From NCBI GenBank assembly GCA_002104945.1, contig MCFH01000010.1, positions 1-64,000 of the forward strand: a DNA stretch of 64,000 nt, read 5' to 3'. Below are positions 4,679 to 23,047 of this stretch, piece after piece; positions within the stretch are counted from its first letter, which is position 1; every line of letters starts with the position of its first letter. A program made the translations under genes and the position numbers. Source of the stretch: Piromyces finnis finn. Its lineage: Eukaryota > Fungi > Neocallimastigomycota. The notes beneath the pieces were generated by a model. That model saw nothing but the letters and a program-made list of their open reading frames with translations. It made no database searches and had not been told where the DNA came from.

Positions 4679-11125
<6,447 letters not shown>

Positions 11126-11702
11126 AAAAAAAAATTCATATTATATAAAAAAAATTATTTATTTATTTTTATATCATATATAACTAATATAGAAAAGTAA
11201 ATAAATAAGATTTTTTTTAATTTTATATTTTTACTTTTTCAATATATTTTTTTATTTATTAATGGATTTTATATAAACTTTTTAAAATTTTCACTTTTTT
11301 TTTTTAATTAAACTATACAATAATATTTTTTTTTTTTTTTTTTTTTTAAAAAAAGAATATATTTCATTATATTATTATAATTATAATTATATTTTAAACG
11401 AATACATAGTAATTTTTTCTCCACCATACTTTTTTCTTTTATATATTTATATCAACAAAATCATTTCAAAAAAAAAAAAAAAAAAAAAAAAGTAAAATAT
11501 TAAATAATATCTAATAATAATAATAATTTAAAATAATTTCATATTAAATATATATATTTAATAAAAATAAAAAGACATTTTTCAAGAAATAAAAATAAAT
11601 TTAATAAAATAATAAAATATAAAATCATATATTTAATACTTCAACAACACTTATTAATTTCTTAAATCATAACTAATAATAATTAATTAATTATTTATTT
11701 AT

Positions 11703-11703
<1 letters not shown>

Positions 11704-11792
<89 letters not shown>
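11704..11792. repeat. (AAT)n tract followed by a short (ATT)n tract
   Basis: Read directly in the intergenic region. Confidence 0.85.
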
Positions 11793-11794
<2 letters not shown>

Positions 11795-12666
11795 TGAAAT
11801 TATTTTTAAAATTTATCATATTACAATTGTTTTTTTTATTTGAATTATATAGTAAATCCTTGCTATTTTCTTTTTTACAAAATAAAGAGTAATACCAATA
11901 ATTACAATCAGAAAAATTTTATAATCCTCATATCATTATTTCCCTTTTTTTTTTTTTAAAAAAAAAAATAAAAATGAAGCAACATACAAAAAAAATTAAT
12001 ACTAATCGATAATTTACTTTATCTCCTTAATGAAATTTTCATTAAAAATATAATTATTATGTGTAATGTTTATTAATTAATAATTTTTTTATTTTAAGAA
12101 ATTATTAAATACTCTTTTAATATTTTTGAAAGATTATAATAATCATTATTTTCATTTTTTCATAACTTTTTTAAACATTTTCTAATATTATGATTTCTAC
12201 TATTATTTAAATTCTATTTTATAATTTATAAGAAGAAAAAAATGAAATAAAAAAGTTATTACAAATACATTAATTTTCATTTATCTTTTTTTTAACCAAT
12301 AAAAATTATCTAAATTTGTATATAAAATATATTATGTATTTTCCTTTTCTGTATGTTCTATTTCTAATAATAATGTATACAATTAATTAATAATTGAATT
12401 TATAAGTTTAAGAATATGTAAGAAAAAAAAAAAAGGCTCATCTTAAATTATAGCGTTCAAAAAAAATATATATTATTTTATAATATTTATAATAATAATA
12501 ATAATAATAGTACTATTTAATAATAGTGATATATTTATTCTATTCTATTCATATATAAATTATCTTTTTTTTTCTAAACAGGAATGAATGAATAAAACTA
12601 AGGATTGAATTATTTATAATTCTATTTTATTATTGTAAAAGGTAAAATTCTTTTCTTTATTCAACT

Positions 12667-12715
<49 letters not shown>

Positions 12716-13534
12716 TTAATAGAGTTATTTAATTAAATAAAAAAAAAAATGGTAATAATGTATTACCTTCTATTAAATAAATTGAACCATATATTAATTT
12801 AATATATTACCATTTTTTTAAAAAAATAATTTTTGTTAATACCAAGGATGAAAAAAAAAAATTAATTAAACTTAATATATATATTAAAAAGTTGTAATGA
12901 AAAATAGGTAGAGTTTTTATTTTTTATAAAAAGTTTATAACTTTAAAAGATCTATTTATTAAATCATTCTATAATTATTAATGTTTTATTTCTTATAAAG
13001 TTATTATTCTAATCTATATTAATTGGATATTAATTGGCTGTAAATTTTGCTAAAATAATGTTGTCCTAACTTTTTATATTTAAAATATAATTTTTTTTTG
13101 ATTTGGATATTTATTCTTTAATTATAATAACACAAAAATAAAAAAATGAAAAATGAAAGATTTTTTTTTTTTTTTTGATTAAATATATTTTTTATTTATA
13201 TTTTTCTAAATAATGGTTTAAAATTCTTATTAAAAATAAAAAAAATGATTAATAAAATAAATTTATAAAATAAATATTATTATTATAGATAAAATTAAGT
13301 AATATTAAATGACATTAAAATAAATAATTGATATTAAAACCTTCAATATGTATATAATTCTATATTGCTAATAATTTATTAAAATAATTAAAAGAAAGAG
13401 ATTATATATACTTTTATTAATAGATAAAAAATAATTAAAATATACTACTAATATGATCATATTTTTCTTTATATAATAAAAATCTGATATATTGTAGAAT
13501 ATTATTAACACTATTAATTCGCAAGATATATTCT

Positions 13535-16500
13535 TTATTCTTCCTTAGTTTCATTTTCCTTGGTTGGTTTGTATTTTTTGAAAATTTGTATTTTTCTATT
13601 TTGGTATTTCATTTTTTTTTTAAAAGCTAAAAATTCAGTCACCTCAGATACATTAGCGATAGCTTTTTCAGAATCAGGGATAGTCATAATATCTGGAATG
13701 GTCATGTTACTTATATCTCTTTTCAATGCTCTTTCTTTAATACTATCATTGGTTCTAACAAATGGTAAATAATAAGATAAAGTATAGATAATGGTGGCAA
13801 TTCTACAAAAGTTAGTGGAAAGGATTTGATAAAATATTGGAAATACAACGCAAACTTCAAAAGGTAATTTAATTTTTGGGTTATTTCTTGCGATGATTAA
13901 ATTAAAGATATCTAAGCTAATGAGTGAAATGGCAATGCAAATGCAAACAATCATTAGTGCTGGTAAATAAGAATGCATTAAAAACATAAATACTAATAGC
14001 ACAAGAAAGGCGTAATCGTTTAAGATGGAAATAATAAAATCAAAACAAAATAATTTAGCTGTAAGAGTAGCTCGATGATTCCAACGACATTTATGGAGCA
14101 AACAATAAAGGAATTTAAAAAGAAAACGATGACGTGCTGGTTCCCAATAAGCAACACGTTGACGTGACAATGAATATTGACCACAATCGCAATCTTTCAT
14201 ATTTTCTCCTAGAAAATGTGGAAGATATTCTTTTAAGTGGAAATAGCATCTTGGTACAAGAGTATCTATGATAACATGTGCTATTTCAATTTTATAATTA
14301 CCATCATGTAATTCATTTGGATCACAAAATTGAGGTTTACCATACATGGTATGAAGACGAAGACCAAGTTGTAAATCATCTCCACGGAAAACTGTATCAT
14401 GACGATAAAGACACTCCAATAGGAATGGGGTACTCCAAGTACTCATAGCCCCACTTGGGAATACTACTGTACCAATATCCTTATGTACCTTTTTACTGTA
14501 CATTGAAATAATATATTCAAGATTTTGAAATGCTGAAACTATACCTTCACGACGATTACTTGCAATAATAGGATAGGCTAATGCTTTTACATTTTGATCC
14601 TTTTTAAAGTAGGATAAAATTTCTTCTTCAACCCAATTTTCCGGAATTAATACATCATCATCGATAATTGAAATGTACTTGATATCAATACCCGACCAAA
14701 ACAAATTATTTATTAGACAAAATTGAGCTAAAGTTTTAGAACCTTCATTTAAATTTGCATAAATAATATTTAATCCACAATAATTAGGATGTGTACATCT
14801 AAAGTGATGACTATAACGATCTACAATTTCCTTCATTTTTTGTTTTTCACTTGGAGAGGAACCATTTTCAGCTATGAAAATTGACATTGGCGTAGTAATT
14901 TTCAATAAATTTTCTAAAGTTGCTGGCAACACATCTGAACTATTATGACATACAATAAGAAAAGCATGATTAATACTTTTATACATGGATACAATTTTAG
15001 ATTGTTTATCAGAATAAGAAAAAGCGTTTTTTCTTCTGATATACTCTTTTTGAAATGATATGTTTTCACCATAATTTTTACAACTGAGTTTTTCGTTTAT
15101 TGAATTAGATGCCTCTGATATATCATCCACGTCAGAATGATTGGATTTATTTTTATTTCCATGAACAATGTCAATTTCTATGACATTTCCTATTTCTTCA
15201 TTTGGTATTCCGTCGTTACCCAAATTAATGTTGATGAATGAATTATTTGTGTCTGTGCTATTATGTTTGTTATAGTTAATACCCTTATCCCCATTCGAAT
15301 CCCTATCATGAGTGGAATAGTTATTGGCACTATCTGAATTATTATTGAAAATGATTGTATTATTGGATGCACTACTATTGTCATAAGTATCACTATATAG
15401 GGTAAAACCATCGTCTTCTTCATCATTAATAATGGTTGATGAACTATCCATTTCATTATAAATAGCTAATGATTTCTTATTAAGAGAAGGCCATTTTACA
15501 AAAGGTGCGCCTAATAAAATCATAAAACTTTCTCTATTAAGTAAAAGCCAACATATAATATTAAAGGTTATAAAGGGTATGCTGAAAGTTGCATAATTAT
15601 TAATGATATAATTATATATTTTTCGACAGAGAACTTTGTAATAACTAAACTTTAGATTGGATCCAATTAAAAAATAGGATATTATAATCATGATCACAAG
15701 TTCAAATAAAGCAACCAACCAAAGCTTGAAAAAAGTAAAAGGAAAAAGTCTTGTTTTTTTATTGGAAAAAAAGTACCAAACAAAAGGATTAATGAAAACA
15801 CCGTATAAAAGATGAATAAAGATGATTATGAATGATATTAAGAAAGCATTTGTAAAAATAGAGTAGATACTGAATAAATTAATATTACGATTAGATTTAA
15901 TAATTTCATCTCGCCTTTTTTTAATAAATATTTTCAAAGAGGCATAATCCTTTTCTATATTTGACATTTTATTTATTTGATTATTATTCTTATCAAGGAT
16001 AGGTTCCAGTGAACCGTCCCATTTTAAATCTGCATGAACCATATTGAAAATACTATCCATTCTATCTAAAAATAAGGTAGTTCCAAAAAAATTATTTACT
16101 ATATAATTTATATAATCTCTAGTGTTATGTTTTTCACTTGAATAATTCATTAAATTATCAAATATTGGTCTTCTCGTATCTTGTTTTCCTTTTCCTATAA
16201 AACGAAATTCCTCAAATTCTGTATAGGTATAATTTTTACTCCAATCATTTAATGGTGAAGAAAAATATCCTTCATGATAATTCCATTGGTTTTTTGTCTA
16301 TCGAGTTAAGAAAAAAAAATTTTAAATATTAATTGGTATGTTATCTTTTTTTTTTTTTTAAATAATAACCATTTTATATCTATCTATCTATATATACTAT
16401 ATATAATATTTCATAAAAGATATAACTACTTACTTTATCATAATATAAAAAATAATTGGTTCCATTATATAAATAGCCATGCTGATTATTTAAAATGTAA

Positions 16501-17699
16501 TCTATAGTCATTATTTTTAAAAATGAATCATAATTAAAGTTTTTTTTTAATTGGTCCAAGGAATTAAAATTTTCAGTCATATAGAATAATTTAGCAAGAT
16601 CATTTTTGGAATGAAAAGTTTCAGGAGATTCAATTCCTTGATACCAATAATTTGCATAACTATCTATATTTTCATTAATTAACAGTTTTGGGAATGTTTC
16701 AATTAAATCAAATTCACCATTGTATTTCATTGGAGAAAAGTGACTATTCATTTGGCCATACATTTCAGTAGTGTTAAATTCATTTTTAAAATAATCAATA
16801 TTTGGATTTTCTTTGATTAAATAAAAACCTATAGGGTTATTATTAAAATAAACTCTGGTAAATCCCACTTGAGCAGATGGTACATCCATAACATTACAGA
16901 TATCGGTATACATTTTATGACGAAGCATAAGATTATCAGAAGAAGTAGATACTAATTGAATACTAGTTTTATTAAACAGATTATAATATAATTTATCTGT
17001 GGGAGATGTTTGTGGTTGGGTTAAACTGTACTCTTTATAGGAGAGAAAATAAGAAGTTTTTTTAGGGTTATGATTCTTTTGAAAATAATATTTATTGGAA
17101 TAGTAGGTAGTAAAATAAATATCGGTATTTATATTATCTGCCAATGCATTTATTTCCAATAATAAATTTTCAAACTTTCCCACCGAATATGGAGTAATAA
17201 TAGTAGCACTTACGTTTAATGATGGACTATTTTGTGAATTGGTGTAATGAGCATTTTCTAAATCCTTATAGCCGGAAATGTCACCATTTAAATAAATTGT
17301 TGATATAAAATTATCAGAAAACAATTCTGAATACTTGTTTTGATTTCTGGTTATTTGGTTTCCTACTACCGTAGAAAGATCTGGATGATTATAAATTGAA
17401 TCATTTCTATTGAAAAATTCATTTAACGGTTGGTTAGAATTCATATTCGATGGTTGAGCCAATCTTTTAAAATTTTCTTCTTTTATGATTTTATTTTTAT
17501 CAGTGATACTATAAGAAACATAACTATATGTTTCCTTTTTATCTAATTCATATTCTCCTCTCCAAATAGGATAATCTGTATCATCTAAATCTACTATTTT
17601 ATTATTAATTTTCAGACCTACTTTTGTTGTATTTCTATTCACCGGGAACACTACACTAAATTGATGAACCTCTAATTTTTTATATAACAAATATAACAT
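13535..17699 (-). CDS. CotH-like (pseudo)kinase domain fused to a multi-pass family 2 glycosyltransferase, about 1340 aa, exons 17699..16434 and 16297..13535
   Basis: A phase-0 intron at 16433..16298 (GTAAGT donor, TAG acceptor) joins NYFLYYDK to TKNQWNYHEGYF. The CotH C-lobe (RRPIFDNL...FLDRMDSIFNMVHADLKWDGSL...LKIFIKKR) is in the same open frame as 3 TM helices and the GT2 motifs (CHNSSDVL, AENG, IIDDDVL, FQNLEY, SGA, GDDLQLG, RQRVAYW), followed by more TM helices. The true 5' end and signal-peptide exon were not found. Confidence 0.82.
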
Positions 17700-18688
17700 T
17701 TATATAAATATGTTATAATGTTATAAGTCAATAGGTAAAAATATATTATAAATGTATATTATTATTATGATATTATGATACATGATTATTAATAACAAAA
17801 TTTTACAGCTAAAAAAATTATAATTATAATATAAATAAAAATTAAAGAATATATATATATATTCTTTAAATACTAACTTGAATAAGCATTTGTGAAAAGA
17901 ATTATTAATTCAAATAAATAAGTAACCCTATATATAAAATTCTTCTTTTTCAACATTTTTATTTTACTAATAATAATAATGTATATAAAGACTATTAAGT
18001 AAGTATATCAAGTATATTATTATTTAGTGTTAATACTATAAAGTATTGCTATTTTTGAATAAATAAAAAAAAACAAAAACACTTGATAAACCTTTTTATT
18101 TTTCTTTATTTTTTATATGGGATTTTCAACCAATAAACCTTGAGAAATAAATAAATAAATATTTATTTTATTTTATTTAAATCATCCATTGAATAATTAT
18201 TCCTATTTAAATGAATTTAAATGGGTATTTAAATATATAAAAAATATTAAAATTAAAAATAAATTAAATTTATGAATTTTTTTTTTTAATACCAAAAAAA
18301 TATTTTTTAATAGTAATACTAATGATATTATTTAATATTAAGCAAAAATAAAAGGTAATACTATTTTAATAAGAAATATCATATTTTACTATTTTATATT
18401 CATTCTTTTAATATTACAATTTTATTTTACTTTTTTTTAAAAAAAGCTTTTTTTTTCCTTATTGAATAATCTTCTATTTTTTGATAGCAAACTTTTGGGT
18501 TACTTGACCAATCAAACAAAAAAAAAAATTTAATATTCCTTCTTTTGTATTTTTATAACTCTTGGTGTATTTTTTTTTTTTCTTTTTGGATGCTTTTATT
18601 TCATTTATAAATATATTTTTATATTGACGCTCTTTAACATCGTTTTATACTTTTAATATTTTTTTTTTAAAAAAAATCTTATTTAAAG

Positions 18689-19847
18689 ATGAATATAAAA
18701 TTTTTAATAGCGGTTTTTCTTTTTCTATTCCTGTTGCCTTTTTCTGTGGATAGTTTAAATTCCTGTCGAAAACTGAAAAATCACTTGTGTCCTTCATGCG
18801 GTAAAGAAGACTATCAATGTGAAACCAATGAAAAGGGTGAGATAGATAGATTGTATGTAATATGAAACAATACAATGCTTTAAACTATTTTTATCAAGTT
18901 TTATAGCTATATTATTAATATAATATAATTTGATAATTTGTATATATTCATAAAAATTAATGTATAATAAATATATATTATAGACATATTAATAATCAAG
19001 ATTTTAGTGGTGGTATTCCAGATAAGATTTTCGAAATAACTTCTATAACATCATTGTAAATAATACTTTTTTTTTTCTATTTGAAAAACTTATTAAAATA
19101 ACCTGTACTAACTTTTTATTATTTATAAAAATCAAATGTGTCTATGTCTTTAAAAATAATAAATTTATATATATATATATTTATAGATATTTACTAAATG
19201 ACAAAATTTTTACACTTTCGAATCAAATTAGTAATCTAAAAAATCTTTTAAGACTGTAAAATTTATACCTTTTAATATAAAATATATCACTTAAAACAAT
19301 TTTTTTTATGAAAAAATTTAATTTATAATAATACTAAAAATTATAATATTTTAAATTCACCTTAACTATTTTATTTTATATGATTAATACAGAGATGTTA
19401 GAAAAAATAATTTGAAAACTATTCCTTCAACCATTAGAAATCTTAGTAAACTTAAATACTTGTAATTTTTAAAAATTTTAAAAAGAATTCACATAAATAA
19501 GCTCTTATATTTTTTTTAAATAAAAAAAGCCAAAAAAATTAATTTATATATTTTTACTAACTTCTTATTTCCATTTATCTATAGAAAACTAAGTAATAAT
19601 CCTATAACAGAACTTCCAGAAGAAATTGGAAATTTAAAGGAACTTAGATCATTGTAAATAAAAAATATAAAAGGATTAAAAAGAAAACTTTTTTTTGATA
19701 TTAATTTAAATCCCTCCCTTTTTTTTTAATTGATTTTTTATTTCTATACAAAGATATTTAACAAATTGTAAATTGAAAAAACTGCCATCATCCATTACTC
19801 AACTTTCTAATCTACAAGATTTGTGAGTACTTCTAAAAATTAAAAGA

Positions 19848-19883
<36 letters not shown>

Positions 19884-22495
19884 AATAATTGTATTTTTTA
19901 TATAAATTTTTATTTTAATTTAATAATAGAAAACTTGAAAATAATGAATTATCAGCTATTTCAGAAGAAATTAAAAATATTAGAAATAAAAAACAATTGT
20001 AAGAGTTATTAAAATATATTTAAATATGGTTATAAAAGTTAAAATAATAAATAATTCTTTATTTAACTTTTTTTTTCATAAAGAGTTTTAGATAACAAAT
20101 CGATTGTTGAATCCTCAATTACACATAATGAAACTGATTTTATGTAAGTTAATTTAAAATAAAATTATTAAAATGGTTTTAATTAAAAAAAAATATTGAT
20201 ATCACTATGAAAGTTAACTAATATAGAATGAATCAATTTATTTATTAATAATATTAAAAAAATTTTAACAGGTCCTATAAAATAACTAGTTTGGTTAGAA
20301 AAAAAAATTTATCATTTTATAAGGATGAAGGCGTCTCTTATATTGCCAAAACTAATGGTAGATATCTTTCAGTATATGACGGCTCTACTTTCAAAGATAT
20401 TTATATTCAAGGTGTAAATATTGGATTAGGTTTACCAAATTATTTTCCCGAAGAAACTGGAATTGCTTATGATCAATATTATGATTGGTTTAATAAAATT
20501 GCGGAAATGAATGCTAATTCCATTAGAGTTTATACCATACAATCACCTGAGTTCTATAAAGCCTTTTATAATTATAATAAAAACAATAAGCATAAACCAA
20601 TCTATTTATTTCAGGGTACATGGTATAATGAAGATCGTTGGTTAGAAACTCAAAATGCATTTGATTCAGAGCTACTTTCTAATCTTTATCAAGACACAAG
20701 AGACTTAATAGATATAATCCATGGAAATTCAATTTTACCGAAATTGCCAGGAAGAGCATCAGGTATATATTCATTTGATATATCTCCTTGGTGTATTGGT
20801 TGGATTTTAGGTGTTGAATCGAGTAAACAATTTGTAAATACGACAAATATTTGTAATCCAGATAAAACTCATTATAAAGGGGAATACATTTCAGCCAATA
20901 ATATACAGCCTTTTGAAGTTTTCTGGGCCATGACTGCTGATTATACAGTTTCCTACGAAATGACGAATTATAAAACTCAAAGACCTATTAGTTTCTCCAA
21001 TTGGCTTACAGCCGATGTCATGCGACATCCTAGTGAAACAATGGAAGATGAAGATACCGTTACACTAGATATTCAACGACTTACCCAAGAAGATGCCTTT
21101 AAATGTGGATTTTTCGCTTCTTATCATGTTTATCCGTATTATCCAAATTTTATGTGGACACAAAAAAATTATATTGAACATAAAAATGATGATGGCAAAA
21201 TAGACCCGTACGAAGCGTATTTACAAGATTTGAAATCAGTTCATTTCGATAACATTCCCCTTCTTGTAGCAGAATTTGGAATACCATCTTCTCGTGGAAT
21301 AACCCATCAAAATCCTATTACCGGTTATAATCAAGGAAAAGTTGATGAAAAAACACAAGGACATATGCTTGTTGAAATGGCAAAAAGTATTAAAGCTAAT
21401 AATTACACTGGTTGTTTAATTTTTTCATGGCAAGATGAATGGTTTAAGCGTACTTGGAATACTATGGATAATACAAATGAAACCAGAAGAGCGTATTGGG
21501 ATGATGTTCAAACAAATGAACAAAACTTTGGTATACTTGATTTTGTTTCCTATACCGATGACCATAAGATTATGATACTCGATGGCAAAACAGATGACTG
21601 GACCTCCAATGATAAATTTACTGAAACAAGGAATATCAAGATGTCAGTTAAAAAGGATGCCGCCTATATTTATATTTTACTTGAAGCAAATACTATGGTT
21701 GATTTAACAAAGGATAGAGTATTGATATCTTTTGATGTTACTCCGAAGTCCGGTTCTCACATCTATACCTCCCATGATGGTAAAGATATTTTTAATTTTT
21801 CCGAAGCTGTTGATTTTGTGCTTGAATTAAACGGACGAAATGATACAGAAATATTTACCCATGAATATTATGACAAGTTTGTCTATTCCTATTATCAGTA
21901 TGAAGAAGTGAAAATCAAAGGATTAAAGCCTGCCACTTCACGTAAAAGTTCAGTGTTTAATTCGATTAAACTTTTAAATGAAATAGAACTTCTTCTTCCT
22001 GATAGAAATGAAACGATCAATACACTCTATGATATTACTGGTAAGCTTTTATTTGGAAGTACGGATAAAGCATCTCCAGATTATTCAACAATATCGGATT
22101 TCTATTTAACCCCATCTATTGCTGAAATAAGAATTGCATATGGTTTACTTAATTTTAGAGATCCATCATCTTTAGCAATTGAAGATGATTTCTATGCTCT
22201 TGATAAGAATGTTGATTTAGAAATAGATTCAATTAAAATAGGACTTACTGAAGGCAATAACACCATATTCAAAACCTTCTCATGGGATAAATGGGATACT
22301 GTTGCTTATCAAGAAAGGTTAAAAGATTCCTATTATATTTTACAAGGCTATTTTGCAGAAGAAGAAAATTCCAATCATTCCTATAAGAAAATTATAATAC
22401 TATCTATACTAATGATTATTATACTATTGTTATTATTCTTACTATTTTTTTTTTTCAAAAGAAAAAATATTATTAAAAAAAATATACAACCTTAA
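18689..22495 (+). CDS. Signal peptide - 6 LRR - putative TIM-barrel glycoside hydrolase (clan GH-A-like) - probable beta-sandwich - C-terminal TM; 9 exons, about 954 aa
   Basis: Exons 18689-18852, 18984-19055, 19187-19255, 19393-19461, 19585-19653, 19754-19822, 19930-19998, 20084-20143 and 20272-22495 all join with phase-2 GT-AG introns. The 69-72 nt exons each encode one LRR (e.g. LSNNPITELPEEIGNLKELRSL). The last exon has QGVNIG, MNANSIRVYT, WILGVES, SYHVYPYYP, VAEFGIPSSRG, FSWQDEWFK, then LDGKTDDW and a hydrophobic TM followed by KRK. Confidence 0.82.
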
Positions 22496-23012
22496 AGCAA
22501 AGCAAGACAAAAAAACAAAAAAAAAAAAAATAGTACAAATTTATTATAATATTAAATAATTTCAATATTTATTATTATTATTATTATTTTTAATTATCAT
22601 AGAATATACTATATTATTATTATCTATAATTATTTATTATCCATTATTTATTATTTCTTATTATTTTCATTATCCTAGACTCTCAAACAGTATACTGGAA
22701 GAAAAATAAATACAATAAAATTAATTATAAATTTAATTTTTTATATTTTATAAATAATACTAAAAAAATTATCTTTTTTTTTTTTTTTTTTTTTTTGGTT
22801 TTGTGTTTATTTTTATTAAATTTATTTTAAACTAATAATTATAATACTAATAATAATAATAGCAAAAAATAACATTCTTTTTAGTTTTTGTCTTTATTGA
22901 TGTTTACTGTAATGTCATATATATTTATTATATATGTATTAAACCATATATTAATACTATAAAGTATTATTTTACTACACTATAAGAAAAAATTTAATTA
23001 TTGGATTTTTTT

Positions 23013-23047
<35 letters not shown>

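Follow-up and report, generated by a model that had tools for sequence, protein, structure and literature searches.

Many carbohydrate enzymes of anaerobic gut fungi are known to have been taken over from rumen bacteria and then fitted with modules of fungal origin. Another point of reference for the gene discussed here is PslG, a membrane-anchored barrel plus β-sandwich of family GH39 in clan GH-A, which serves as the hydrolase of a synthase-dependent exopolysaccharide (EPS) system. Post-transfer fusion xenologues in early-diverging fungi are described by Ciach et al. 2024 (PMC11291939), an example being a Piromyces finnis GH48 joined to a fungal CBM10 (ORX60185.1). As for the enzyme fold, GH157 endo-β-1,3-glucanase has been described in the form of LaGH157 (PDB 9g4n/9fz9) and of Bacteroides GH157 (PMC10229575).

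Here we describe one expressed gene of P. finnis which, in our judgement, quite probably encodes a type-I surface protein, with a Lachnospiraceae-derived barrel plus β-sandwich carried on a fungal LRR cassette and a transmembrane anchor. It lies on the + strand of a 64,000-nt stretch ("the window") of contig MCFH01000010.1; no further copy of the gene was found within the window. The gene product is identical to the P. finnis "L domain-like protein" of 954 aa in GenBank (ORX54642.1); the gene model had thus been deposited before. In addition, the P. finnis protein is one of four, from Piromyces and Anaeromyces only, that make up HGT Cluster_374 of Ciach et al. 2024 (PMC11291939), where they appear in a supplementary table only, labelled 'hgt' with Neocallimastigaceae as recipient and Eubacteriales/Bacillota as donor. 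This cluster carries the flag 'No', its accessions were not found in the other supplement sheets examined, and the main text holds no discussion of the LRR-enzyme fusion. A literature search found no characterised member of the family and no LRR-GH fusion in gut fungi, and neither subject is mentioned in the text and one supplement of Murphy et al. 2019 (bioRxiv 10.1101/487215).

The gene comprises nine exons (18689-18852, 18984-19055, 19187-19255, 19393-19461, 19585-19653, 19754-19822, 19930-19998, 20084-20143 and 20272-22495, all on the + strand). The eight introns between them measure 85-137 nt, and every one has GT..AG borders, lies in phase 2 and splits a Leu codon; their GC content is 7-16%, versus 16-32% in the exons. 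In one run (X1), a single 2,916-nt contig carries exons 1-9 spliced together, and the joints found in two runs of other studies (X2 and X3) are identical to those of X1. That is, the nine exons proposed by the initial annotation are all joined in contigs from three studies, including the joint 20143->20272 leading into the enzyme exon, which is present in 3/3 runs. The joint of intron 2 falls inside a masked TA repeat and rests on contiguous record positions (X1 record 500-568; X3 record 6). We conclude that the nine-exon gene is real and transcribed, with transcription read from intron-less contigs rather than from raw stranded reads and the run label 'RNA?' being a guess, and that an LRR module and a predicted glycanase derived from Lachnospiraceae are fused in it.

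Upstream of the start codon, the transcript has a 5′ untranslated part that extends at minimum over 18461..18688 (+), record 1 of X1 beginning at 18461. Exon 1 (18689..18852, +) provides the start codon, a signal peptide (MNIKFLIAVFLFLFLLPFSVDS), whose N-terminal hydrophobic stretch scores 2.36, and a four-Cys cap (C-x6-C-x2-C-x6-C). Exons 2 to 7 and their introns (18984..19998, +) follow, each exon coding for one LRR of 23-24 residues, as delimited by the spliced joints and the phase-2 flanking introns; with lengths of 72, 69, 69, 69, 69 and 69 nt, these exons fit the arrangement of six LRRs, one per phase-2 exon of 69-72 nt, that had been read from the sequence beforehand. Exon 8 (60 nt; 20084..20143, +), which is set by the joints 19998->20084 and 20143->20272, would encode a degenerate seventh LRR or a C-cap (VLDNKSIVESSITHNETDFM). 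Intron 8 (128 nt, GTAAGT..AACAG, phase 2; 20144..20271, +), spliced in X1, X2 and X3, is the seam at which the native LRR exons meet the exon of bacterial derivation; bacterial homology starts ~15 residues into exon 9.

This last exon (2,224 nt; 20272..22495, +) runs from a linker through the stop codon. It is intronless both as a listed ORF and in the contigs, which are colinear with it across 20272-22283, 20272-22407 and 20272-22492, in agreement with the ~2.2-kb intronless enzyme exon suggested earlier. Within it, the AF2 model and structural matches delimit a clan GH-A-type (β/α)8 barrel (ORF residues ~10-410; 20318..21520, +), and the AF2 model a β-sandwich (ORF residues 411-692; 21521..22366, +) with LDGKTDDW at its start. 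The protein ends in a 22-residue transmembrane helix (IIILSILMIIILLLLFLLFFFF; hydropathy 3.61; 22391..22456, +) and a basic 12-residue cytoplasmic tail (KRKNIIKKNIQP), which together with the stop codon occupies 22457..22495 (+); the initial annotation had called both this helix and a tail of ~12 aa.

Two parts of this architecture are fungal additions. Six LRR units of 23-24 residues are readable in the translation, and Pfam matches on the identical public protein (P0121:1-225) were obtained for LRR_14 (1.7e-19), LRR_8 (8.5e-17) and LRR_1 (3.5e-9). The LRR region and the C-terminal transmembrane helix were each absent from 93/93 bacterial homologues, which reach only 0-15 aa beyond the β-sandwich domain. 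With LRRs and such an anchor missing throughout the bacterial homologues, both are additions made by the fungus; the anchor, like the LRRs, was thus gained after the transfer, a part of the story that the initial annotation overlooked.

Similarity was uninformative as to the origin of the LRRs, the nearest Atlas clusters being a mixture of Bacteroidota, archaea, animals and plants, and for this reason the shared exon cassette was used as origin evidence. In an Anaeromyces robustus gene (L087:22365 onwards), the same cassette of signal, Cys cap and one LRR per exon precedes a CotH domain. The signal/Cys-cap/INNQDFSxGIP start of the two genes is identical, and each LRR in A. robustus is again a 69-nt exon with a split Leu codon at its end, followed by GTAAG. 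What differs is the C-terminal partner, which in P. finnis is the bacterial-derived GH-A-like enzyme rather than CotH/chitin-binding modules. Reuse of the one-repeat-per-exon cassette before CotH bears out the idea of a native LRR module. In addition, lineages differ in the number of LRRs: P0122, a 915-aa protein derived from a transcript, has ~4, and L083, a metagenomic relative, has one exon less. The symmetric phase-2 exons, the occurrence of the same cassette before CotH and this lineage-variable repeat number together point to a clean post-transfer fusion by exon cassette.

The exon translations are colinear with A. robustus ORX78336.1 and ORX83716.1, and also with P0122 and L083. A second P. 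finnis copy, ORX54681.1 (JGI model, 759 aa), is 98% identical; its model is without the LRR half, and LRR exons are found upstream in this copy as well as in L083. Head-to-head with the gene lies, as context only, a neighbouring gene with CotH and membrane GT2 synthase-like parts (13535..17699, -), recognised by Pfam matches to CotH (3.1e-10; ORF 16380-17699, -) and Glyco_tranf_2_3 (1e-11; ORF 13535-16150, -). This CotH-GT2 neighbourhood is also conserved around the second P. finnis copy and, in A. robustus, next to one of the copies, the gene for P0004.

As for the enzyme, exon 9 gave no Pfam match at E<=1 except a spurious one to DUF3377, and nothing was returned by NCBIfam, by phmmer versus PDB or by a profile versus PDB. 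The AF2 model of the barrel has a pLDDT of 88 and matches GH157 entry 9g4n (Z 32.6, rmsd 2.3 A, 315 residues) and GH2 glucuronidase catalytic domains (Z ~27); Foldseek, which the initial annotation had named for family assignment, returned clan GH-A-type barrels with E-values of 1e-12 to 1e-9 and a probability of 1.00. Membership in GH157, GH2 or GH5 was considered and rejected, there being no significant sequence similarity and 10-19% identity in the structural alignments. Likewise, exon 9 does not group with the vertically inherited fungal family GH72: no Glyco_hydro_72 Pfam match was found, and the relatives among the best hits are gut fungi and Bacillota only.

Residue conservation follows the predicted fold. 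R79, E176, H279, Y281 and E328 are invariant in 103/103 homologues, position 380 is Trp in 101 of the 103 (W380), and in the model these conserved residues sit on strands β-2, 4, 6, 7 and 8, as in clan GH-A. E176 (GVES; codon 20816-20818, +), the putative acid/base, comes just after strand 168-173 of the AF2 model and E328 (AEFG; codon 21272-21274, +), the putative nucleophile, lies within strand 324-329, an assignment that reflects position in the model rather than residue-level superposition. The Asn that normally precedes the acid/base Glu in clan GH-A was seen in 0/103 homologues, which carry V (22), I (72), M (5), L (1) or T (3) at this position. Some GH-A families also deviate from the N-E motif, so the absence of the Asn weakens the clan GH-A claim rather than excluding it. 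By its model, the N-terminal domain of exon 9 is a confidently folded clan GH-A-type TIM barrel, from which, together with its residues, we infer glycoside-hydrolase activity. Of the TIM-barrel GH-like domain originally proposed, the fold holds up and both Glu residues are invariant, whereas the canonical Asn is missing.

The β-sandwich is likewise without a Pfam match. Its AF2 model (pLDDT 92) resembles CBM74 of Sas6 (Z 10.7, 176 residues), for which Foldseek gave an E of 2.5e-4 but a TM score of only 0.35, the putative carbohydrate-binding protein 4jpq (Z 8.7) and CBM9 (1i82; Z 7.5, 130 residues, 22% identity), and DOMON-type domains score similarly. The domain starting at LDGKTDDW, predicted beforehand as a β-sandwich, is CBM9/CBM74/DOMON-like in the model and probably binds carbohydrate.

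Both domains have their relatives in bacteria. Among the best 120 homologue hits, eukaryotes are represented by gut fungi only, the others being Bacillota at <=51% identity, and whole-architecture matches in the Atlas are all bacterial; absence elsewhere in eukaryotes refers to these best 120 hits, the Atlas clusters and one published cluster. We confirmed 590 bacterial loci, the best 80 of which are almost all Bacillota. Quick trees, which preceded a careful one, placed the fungal clade within Bacillota homologues. The careful tree places the fungal clade (support 100/100) inside a Lachnospiraceae clade, with 97/95, 99/94 and 100/99 at the enclosing nodes; among the members of this enclosing clade are MAGs obtained from the rumen of goat, sheep and water deer, bacterial family labels having been taken from the MAG titles. 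Support for the immediate sister of the fungal clade is weak (80/53), and the fungal stem is long, at 0.9 changes per site. From this nesting, the unit of barrel plus sandwich was horizontally acquired from a Lachnospiraceae-like rumen bacterium. A horizontal acquisition had been suspected from the gene's split structure; the listing by Ciach et al. is independent.

The bacterial homologues consist of an N-terminal anchor or signal, then the barrel, then the β-sandwich. In the Bacilli homologues the N terminus is extended by ~320 aa; this extension, examined for a hint of the substrate (e.g., a deacetylase), matched no Pfam family. Of 82 bacterial loci, 62 hold a GT2 and 52 a HEAT-repeat protein, and XrtG-type loci (TIGR03111, 617 bits) were found in the donor clade. 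Judged by gene content, the bacterial gene lies in exopolysaccharide loci with a PgaC/XrtG-type GT2 synthase. Co-transfer of the synthase was rejected, the GT2 next to the fungal gene being only 23% identical to the operon GT2; moreover, when the CotH-GT2 neighbour was compared with the 756 proteins encoded around the gene in all 82 bacterial loci, no match better than E 0.01 came up. The two GT2s are related at family level only.

Gene structure and transcription are shown above, as are the fold, the conserved residues, the bacterial descent of the enzyme part and the fungal provenance of the LRRs and the anchor; we picture the history of the gene as follows. The ancestral bacterial protein would have been N-terminally anchored or secreted, and encoded in an EPS locus around a PgaC/IcaA-like or XrtG-associated GT2 synthase. 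The transferred barrel plus sandwich unit is still contained in one intronless exon. The fungal cassette, with its signal peptide, its Cys cap and LRRs at one to an exon, would have taken the place of the bacterial signal or lipobox region, joined to the enzyme via a new phase-2 intron; at the 3′ end, the fungus would have lengthened the gene with a transmembrane anchor. From N to C terminus, the predicted product would thus read signal peptide, four-Cys cap, six LRRs plus a degenerate seventh, barrel, β-sandwich, transmembrane helix and 12-residue tail. We infer that it could function as a membrane-tethered, outward-facing retaining β-glycanase or transglycosylase, with E176 on β-4 as acid/base and E328 on β-7 as nucleophile. 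By analogy with EPS-system hydrolases such as PslG, the enzyme might cut or remodel a surface or matrix polysaccharide, the β-sandwich holding the glycan and the LRRs offering a docking surface for a protein or ligand.

The glycan concerned might belong to other organisms. As a membrane-anchored glycanase, the protein could be turned on the EPS of neighbouring Lachnospiraceae, produced by XrtG- or PgaC-type loci, for biofilm dispersal or feeding, and not on a fungal glycan. The active-site invariants are all kept at ~50% identity, which makes conserved linkage specificity likely; the nearest relatives are rumen Lachnospiraceae with an EPS locus; and because the GT2 next to the fungal gene is not the operon GT2, the polymer on which the enzyme originally acted is perhaps not produced by the fungus. 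Two things speak against such a target: the transmembrane tether, which limits reach to glycans touching the fungal surface, and the protein's lack of a dockerin and of a secreted form; moreover, in P. finnis and at one of the A. robustus copies the gene adjoins that of a GT2 synthase, which would suit a synthase and hydrolase paired to act on the fungus's own glycan. We regard this use as possible yet doubtful. A further proposal, which strikes us as unlikely, is that the bacterial protein founds an undescribed clan GH-A family, acting as the dedicated hydrolase of a widespread, uncharacterised Bacillota EPS system, and that gut fungi use their LRR-mounted, membrane-anchored version as a weapon or harvesting tool against the matrix of the donor. 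Such a system would pair the PgaC/XrtG-type GT2 with either a HEAT-repeat protein or exosortase G and, in Bacilli, be controlled by c-di-GMP. More than 4,400 clusters at 90% identity make up the bacterial family, which lacks a Pfam model and goes under the wrong name of 'family 2 glycosyl transferase'.

The layout of signal peptide, LRRs, transmembrane helix and 12-aa tail would also be compatible with a receptor-like sensor, in which an LRR and glycan-binding ectodomain signals via a partner as in plant LRR RLPs and catalysis is secondary or lost. Yet the catalytic-type residues are all invariant in 10/10 fungal sequences, which argues for retained enzymology, the protein has no kinase or other signalling domain and no known partner, the repeat number varies among lineages (as noted for P0122 and L083), and the LRR cassette, which also stands before CotH, looks more like a general-purpose surface module than a specific sensor. 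A sensor thus seems improbable to us; of the receptor-like layout put forward in the initial annotation, the topology stands, whereas a receptor function is unsupported with a tail of 12 aa and no signalling domain. An artefact, be it two separate genes in a mis-joined model, bacterial contamination or a transfer from fungus to bacteria, would agree with the JGI model of the second copy (ORX54681.1) being without the LRR half and with prokaryote-style gene calls on metagenome contigs yielding the big ORF only. It is hardly credible, given that single contigs in three studies cross 20143->20272, that LRR exons stand upstream in the second copy and in L083, that exon 9 has a gut-fungal composition (GC 0.31) and is set among spliceosomal introns and AT-rich fungal DNA, and that the fungal clade nests within Bacillota homologues drawn from the 590 confirmed loci.

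Our preferred reading, a bacterial enzyme unit remounted on the fungal surface, would extend the pattern known from gut fungi, in that a whole signal/LRR exon cassette and a membrane anchor turn a component of a bacterial operon into a type-I surface protein. Its seam is a clean natural case of exon-cassette fusion to an intronless xenologue. In addition, a large bacterial family without a family model is here placed in clan GH-A by structure and in GT2-based EPS loci by context, and the enzyme is a concrete target for finding a new glycoside-hydrolase family and its polymer. The LRR-enzyme could also be relevant to how fungi and bacteria interact in the rumen.

Compared with the known systems, the P. 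finnis barrel resembles the GH157 and GH2 β-glucuronidase/galacturonidase domains in its (β/α)8 architecture with Glu at the ends of β-4 and β-7, and likewise shares the H-x-Y motif on β-6 and the Trp on β-8. It differs from them by an identity of 12-19%, the lack of an HMM/profile link, [VIM]-E in place of N-E and another accessory domain. Similar to PslG, the bacterial family lies beside a processive-type GT2 synthase in EPS loci and combines an N-terminal anchor/signal with a barrel and a β-sandwich, but it is another sequence family, with a HEAT-repeat protein or the XrtG exosortase set instead of Psl as partners; the fungal copy departs further, being out of the operon and re-anchored through a C-terminal transmembrane helix. 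With the xenologues of Ciach et al., the P. finnis protein shares an intronless bacterial enzyme domain joined to fungal modules, although what the fungus added is an LRR exon cassette with a transmembrane anchor rather than a CBM or dockerin. Plant LRR RLPs, finally, have the same signal peptide, extracellular LRRs, single transmembrane helix and very short tail, with one LRR per small exon. Unlike in plant RLPs, a 680-residue enzyme plus CBM unit stands between LRRs and helix in P. finnis, and the repeats, each 23 residues long and of the LRR_8/LRR_14 type, number just 6-7; the resemblance is one of layout only.

The window is extremely AT-rich (GC 14-34%), and its open reading frame at 20291-22495 shares 99-100% identity with Piromyces finnis proteins, identifying the DNA as that of this anaerobic gut fungus. 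Upstream of this frame, tblastn with two Anaeromyces robustus proteins (927-940 aa), both carrying LRR Pfam domains N-terminal to the same exon-9 domain, revealed colinear short exons. Contigs from four public runs were then aligned to 18400-22800. In run X1, a single 2,916-nt contig splices 18461-18852, 18984-19055, 69 nt ending at 19255, 19393-19461, 19585-19653, 19754-19822, 19930-19998, 20084-20143, and 20272-22283. Identical joints were found in runs of two further studies, with GT..AG at every skipped segment; the joint of intron 2, lying within a masked TA repeat, is evidenced by contiguous record positions only. The joint from 20143 to 20272, on which the initial annotation had hinged, was present in three runs. 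Since these contigs lack introns, we take them as processed transcripts, even though their run type, "RNA?", is a guessed label.

The resulting nine-exon gene, here called LRR-GH (18689-22495, plus strand), has a coding length of 2,865 nt and eight introns, all phase 2, of 85-137 nt and 7-16% GC. Exon 1 encodes a signal peptide and a four-Cys cap; exons 2 to 7 (72, 69, 69, 69, 69, and 69 nt) encode one LRR apiece, just as initially proposed, and exon 8 (60 nt) a last, degenerate repeat. Profile matches in this region were strong (LRR_14, 1.7e-19; LRR_8, 8.5e-17). Exon 9 is the anticipated single intronless exon (2,224 nt) and encodes at its C terminus a 22-residue transmembrane (TM) helix followed by the tail KRKNIIKKNIQP, in line with the helix and ∼12-aa tail expected there. 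The exons are 100% identical to GenBank ORX54642.1 ("L domain-like protein [Piromyces finnis]," 954 aa; reached via cluster look-up), one HSP overrunning two residues into intron 1, so the gene model is already public. Within one LRR exon (19613-19648), contigs of all four runs also gave partial matches that run on into other LRR sequence (e.g., ...ELELNNNKIQV); such contigs come from transcripts of further LRR genes with a common repeat motif.

Exon 9 had no match in Pfam, NCBIfam, or PDB, the last searched by phmmer and by profile. Its AlphaFold2 model, built with 25 homologues in the alignment, is confident (pLDDT 88, pTM 0.87), and Foldseek ranked GH157, GH2 glucuronidases, and GH5 mannanases best (E 3.5e-12 and weaker; probability 1.00). 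By VIA-align, the model matched GH157 entry 9g4n with Z 32.6 (315 residues, 2.3 Å, 14% identity) and GH2 catalytic domains with Z ∼27, which bears out, for a predicted structure, the proposed TIM-barrel glycoside hydrolase-like domain. GH157 is a family of endo-beta-1,3-glucanases (PMC10229575). Across 103 homologues, R79, E176, H279, Y281, and E328 are invariant, E176 and E328 being the glutamates of the GVES and AEFG motifs previously singled out as putatively catalytic, and W380 is Trp in 101. These six residues fall on model strands beta-2, 4, 6, 7, and 8, a placement that, on the model, is the clan GH-A pattern, so the two glutamates had been rightly chosen. The position preceding E176 is Val, Ile, Met, Leu, or Thr, the usual Asn occurring in none of the 103. 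Modelled separately, the C-terminal 283 residues form a beta-sandwich (pLDDT 92) resembling CBM74 of Ruminococcus Sas6 (Z 10.7), a putative carbohydrate-binding protein of Bacteroides (Z 8.7), and CBM9 (Z 7.5, 22% identity); DOMON-type domains are also similar. The suggested carbohydrate-binding sandwich around LDGKTDDW thus holds at the level of fold only.

A word-index search returned more than 4,472 related 90%-identity clusters. Among the matches listed, seven gut-fungal sequences came first (69-99% identity), followed exclusively by bacterial ones (≤51%), the named ones from Lachnospiraceae, Roseburia, Ruminococcus, Clostridium, or Eubacterium and mislabelled "family 2 glycosyl transferase." In the ESM Atlas, matches to the whole architecture were bacterial without exception. 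A scan of bacterial genomes, one set of species representatives, confirmed 590 loci, of which the best 80 were almost all from Bacillota, with Lachnospiraceae MAGs in the top ranks, several from the rumen of goat, sheep, and water-deer. The seven fungal rows of a 100-row tree group as a single clade (support 100) within a 32-row Lachnospiraceae-dominated clade (100; further nodes 95 and 85). A more careful 47-row tree placed the fungal clade (100/100) within nodes of 97/95, 99/94, and 100/99, its immediate sister being weakly resolved (80/53). This nesting is what the initial annotation had named as the mark of horizontal acquisition. The bacteria-to-fungus transfer is not new, as it is already listed by Ciach et al. 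2024 (PMC11291939): in their supplementary "Cluster summary," Cluster_374 (ORX54642.1, ORX54681.1, ORX78336.1, and ORX83716.1) is of type "hgt," with recipient taxid 29007 (Neocallimastigaceae), donor 186802/1239 (Eubacteriales/Bacillota), and the flag "No." The accessions are absent from the other supplementary sheets examined, so Cluster_374 was apparently left out of the authors' well-supported set of xenologues; we take the flag "No" in that sense.

Each of the 93 bacterial sequences inspected starts with a hydrophobic signal or lipobox region and ends 0-15 residues past the conserved domain. LRRs and a C-terminal TM helix are absent from all of them, so the LRR half, the TM helix, and the tail were added after transfer. 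In A. robustus (MCFG01000067.1), the LRR-GH gene ORX83716.1 is followed, 8 kb downstream, by an LRR-CotH gene (L087:22365-23976). The latter starts in the same way, with a signal peptide, a Cys cap, and a "INNQDFSDGIPDSIFNITSLTDL" repeat, and continues with further LRRs, one per 69-nt exon ending TTG|GTAAG, before the CotH domain. The LRR half is therefore a native fungal cassette, as initially proposed, and is prefixed to two different domains. LRR number, which the symmetric phase-2 exons permit to vary, is six plus one in P. finnis LRR-GH, one exon fewer in a metagenomic relative (L083), and ∼4 in a 915-aa transcript-derived relative. Similarity searches for the ultimate source of the LRRs were uninformative.

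The bacterial genes have characteristic neighbours: a GT2 of ∼470 aa in 62 of 82 loci, a HEAT-repeat protein of ∼356 aa in 52 of 82, and, in Bacilli, additionally a response regulator (RR)-GGDEF protein and a hybrid histidine kinase. The best NCBIfam matches of this GT2 were PgaC/IcaA, under cut-off. The Lachnospiraceae clade containing the fungi has an exosortase-G type locus, with a TIGR03111 XrtG-associated GT2 (617 bits, over cut-off), an EpsH-type exosortase, PTPS, and PTPS_related. Judged by these neighbours, the family is the component of synthase-type exopolysaccharide loci that lies outside the cell and is probably hydrolytic, which in known exopolysaccharide systems is the place of PslG, BcsZ, or PgaB; no characterised member was found in the literature. 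In Bacilli, the operon order is fixed (RR-GGDEF, HEAT, GT2, exon-9 homologue, RR, hybrid histidine kinase), and the homologues (loci L033, L037, L049, L053, and others, e.g., L053:4846-5865; ∼1,070-1,119 aa) have an additional N-terminal region of ∼320 aa with no Pfam match. Some Paenibacillaceae and Clostridia (L016, L024, and L044) have two or three tandem paralogues adjoining HEAT and GT2.

In P. finnis, too, a GT2 is close by: a CotH plus GT2 membrane gene (13535-17699, minus strand) stands head-to-head with LRR-GH. We considered whether it is the synthase of the bacterial operon and rejected this, the two being unrelated beyond family level, so the operon was not co-transferred. A 12-kb segment spanning both genes (10918-23023) recurs, ∼98% identical, as a second copy on the same 1.2-Mb scaffold (L088:872-12846; MCFH01000010.1:166121-188528). 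The public model of this copy, ORX54681.1 (759 aa), is truncated, and the LRR exons of the copy are intact at L088:8530-10003. The C-terminal tail of ORX54681.1 differs through a frameshift in the T-run encoding TM helix and tail, in which run X3 shows a 2-nt deletion and several substitutions (22445 and 22433-22460); this poly-T tract makes tail length unstable among copies and strains. In A. robustus, ORX78336.1 is preceded 9.5 kb upstream by a homologue of the GT2 C terminus (L086:3-500; 68% identical), encoded on the same strand. This partial conservation of the neighbourhood weakly favours a synthase/hydrolase pairing in the fungus.

Most of the initial interpretation stands, the exception being "receptor-like," which describes topology only and was over-read: every catalytic-type residue is kept in 10 of 10 fungal sequences, arguing that enzyme function is retained. 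The best-supported reading is that LRR-GH would encode a retaining beta-glycanase or transglycosylase that is tethered to the membrane and faces outward, its predicted enzyme part originating from an exopolysaccharide-locus enzyme of Lachnospiraceae and mounted behind native LRRs. It may act on a glycan of the fungal surface, which the neighbouring GT2 might produce, or else on a bacterial matrix. Beyond the public gene model and transfer listing, what is new is that structure places a large bacterial family, hitherto without annotation, in clan GH-A and shows a CBM9/74-like domain in it, that this family has an exopolysaccharide-locus context, and that both LRR cassette and TM anchor were added by the fungus through exon-cassette fusion.
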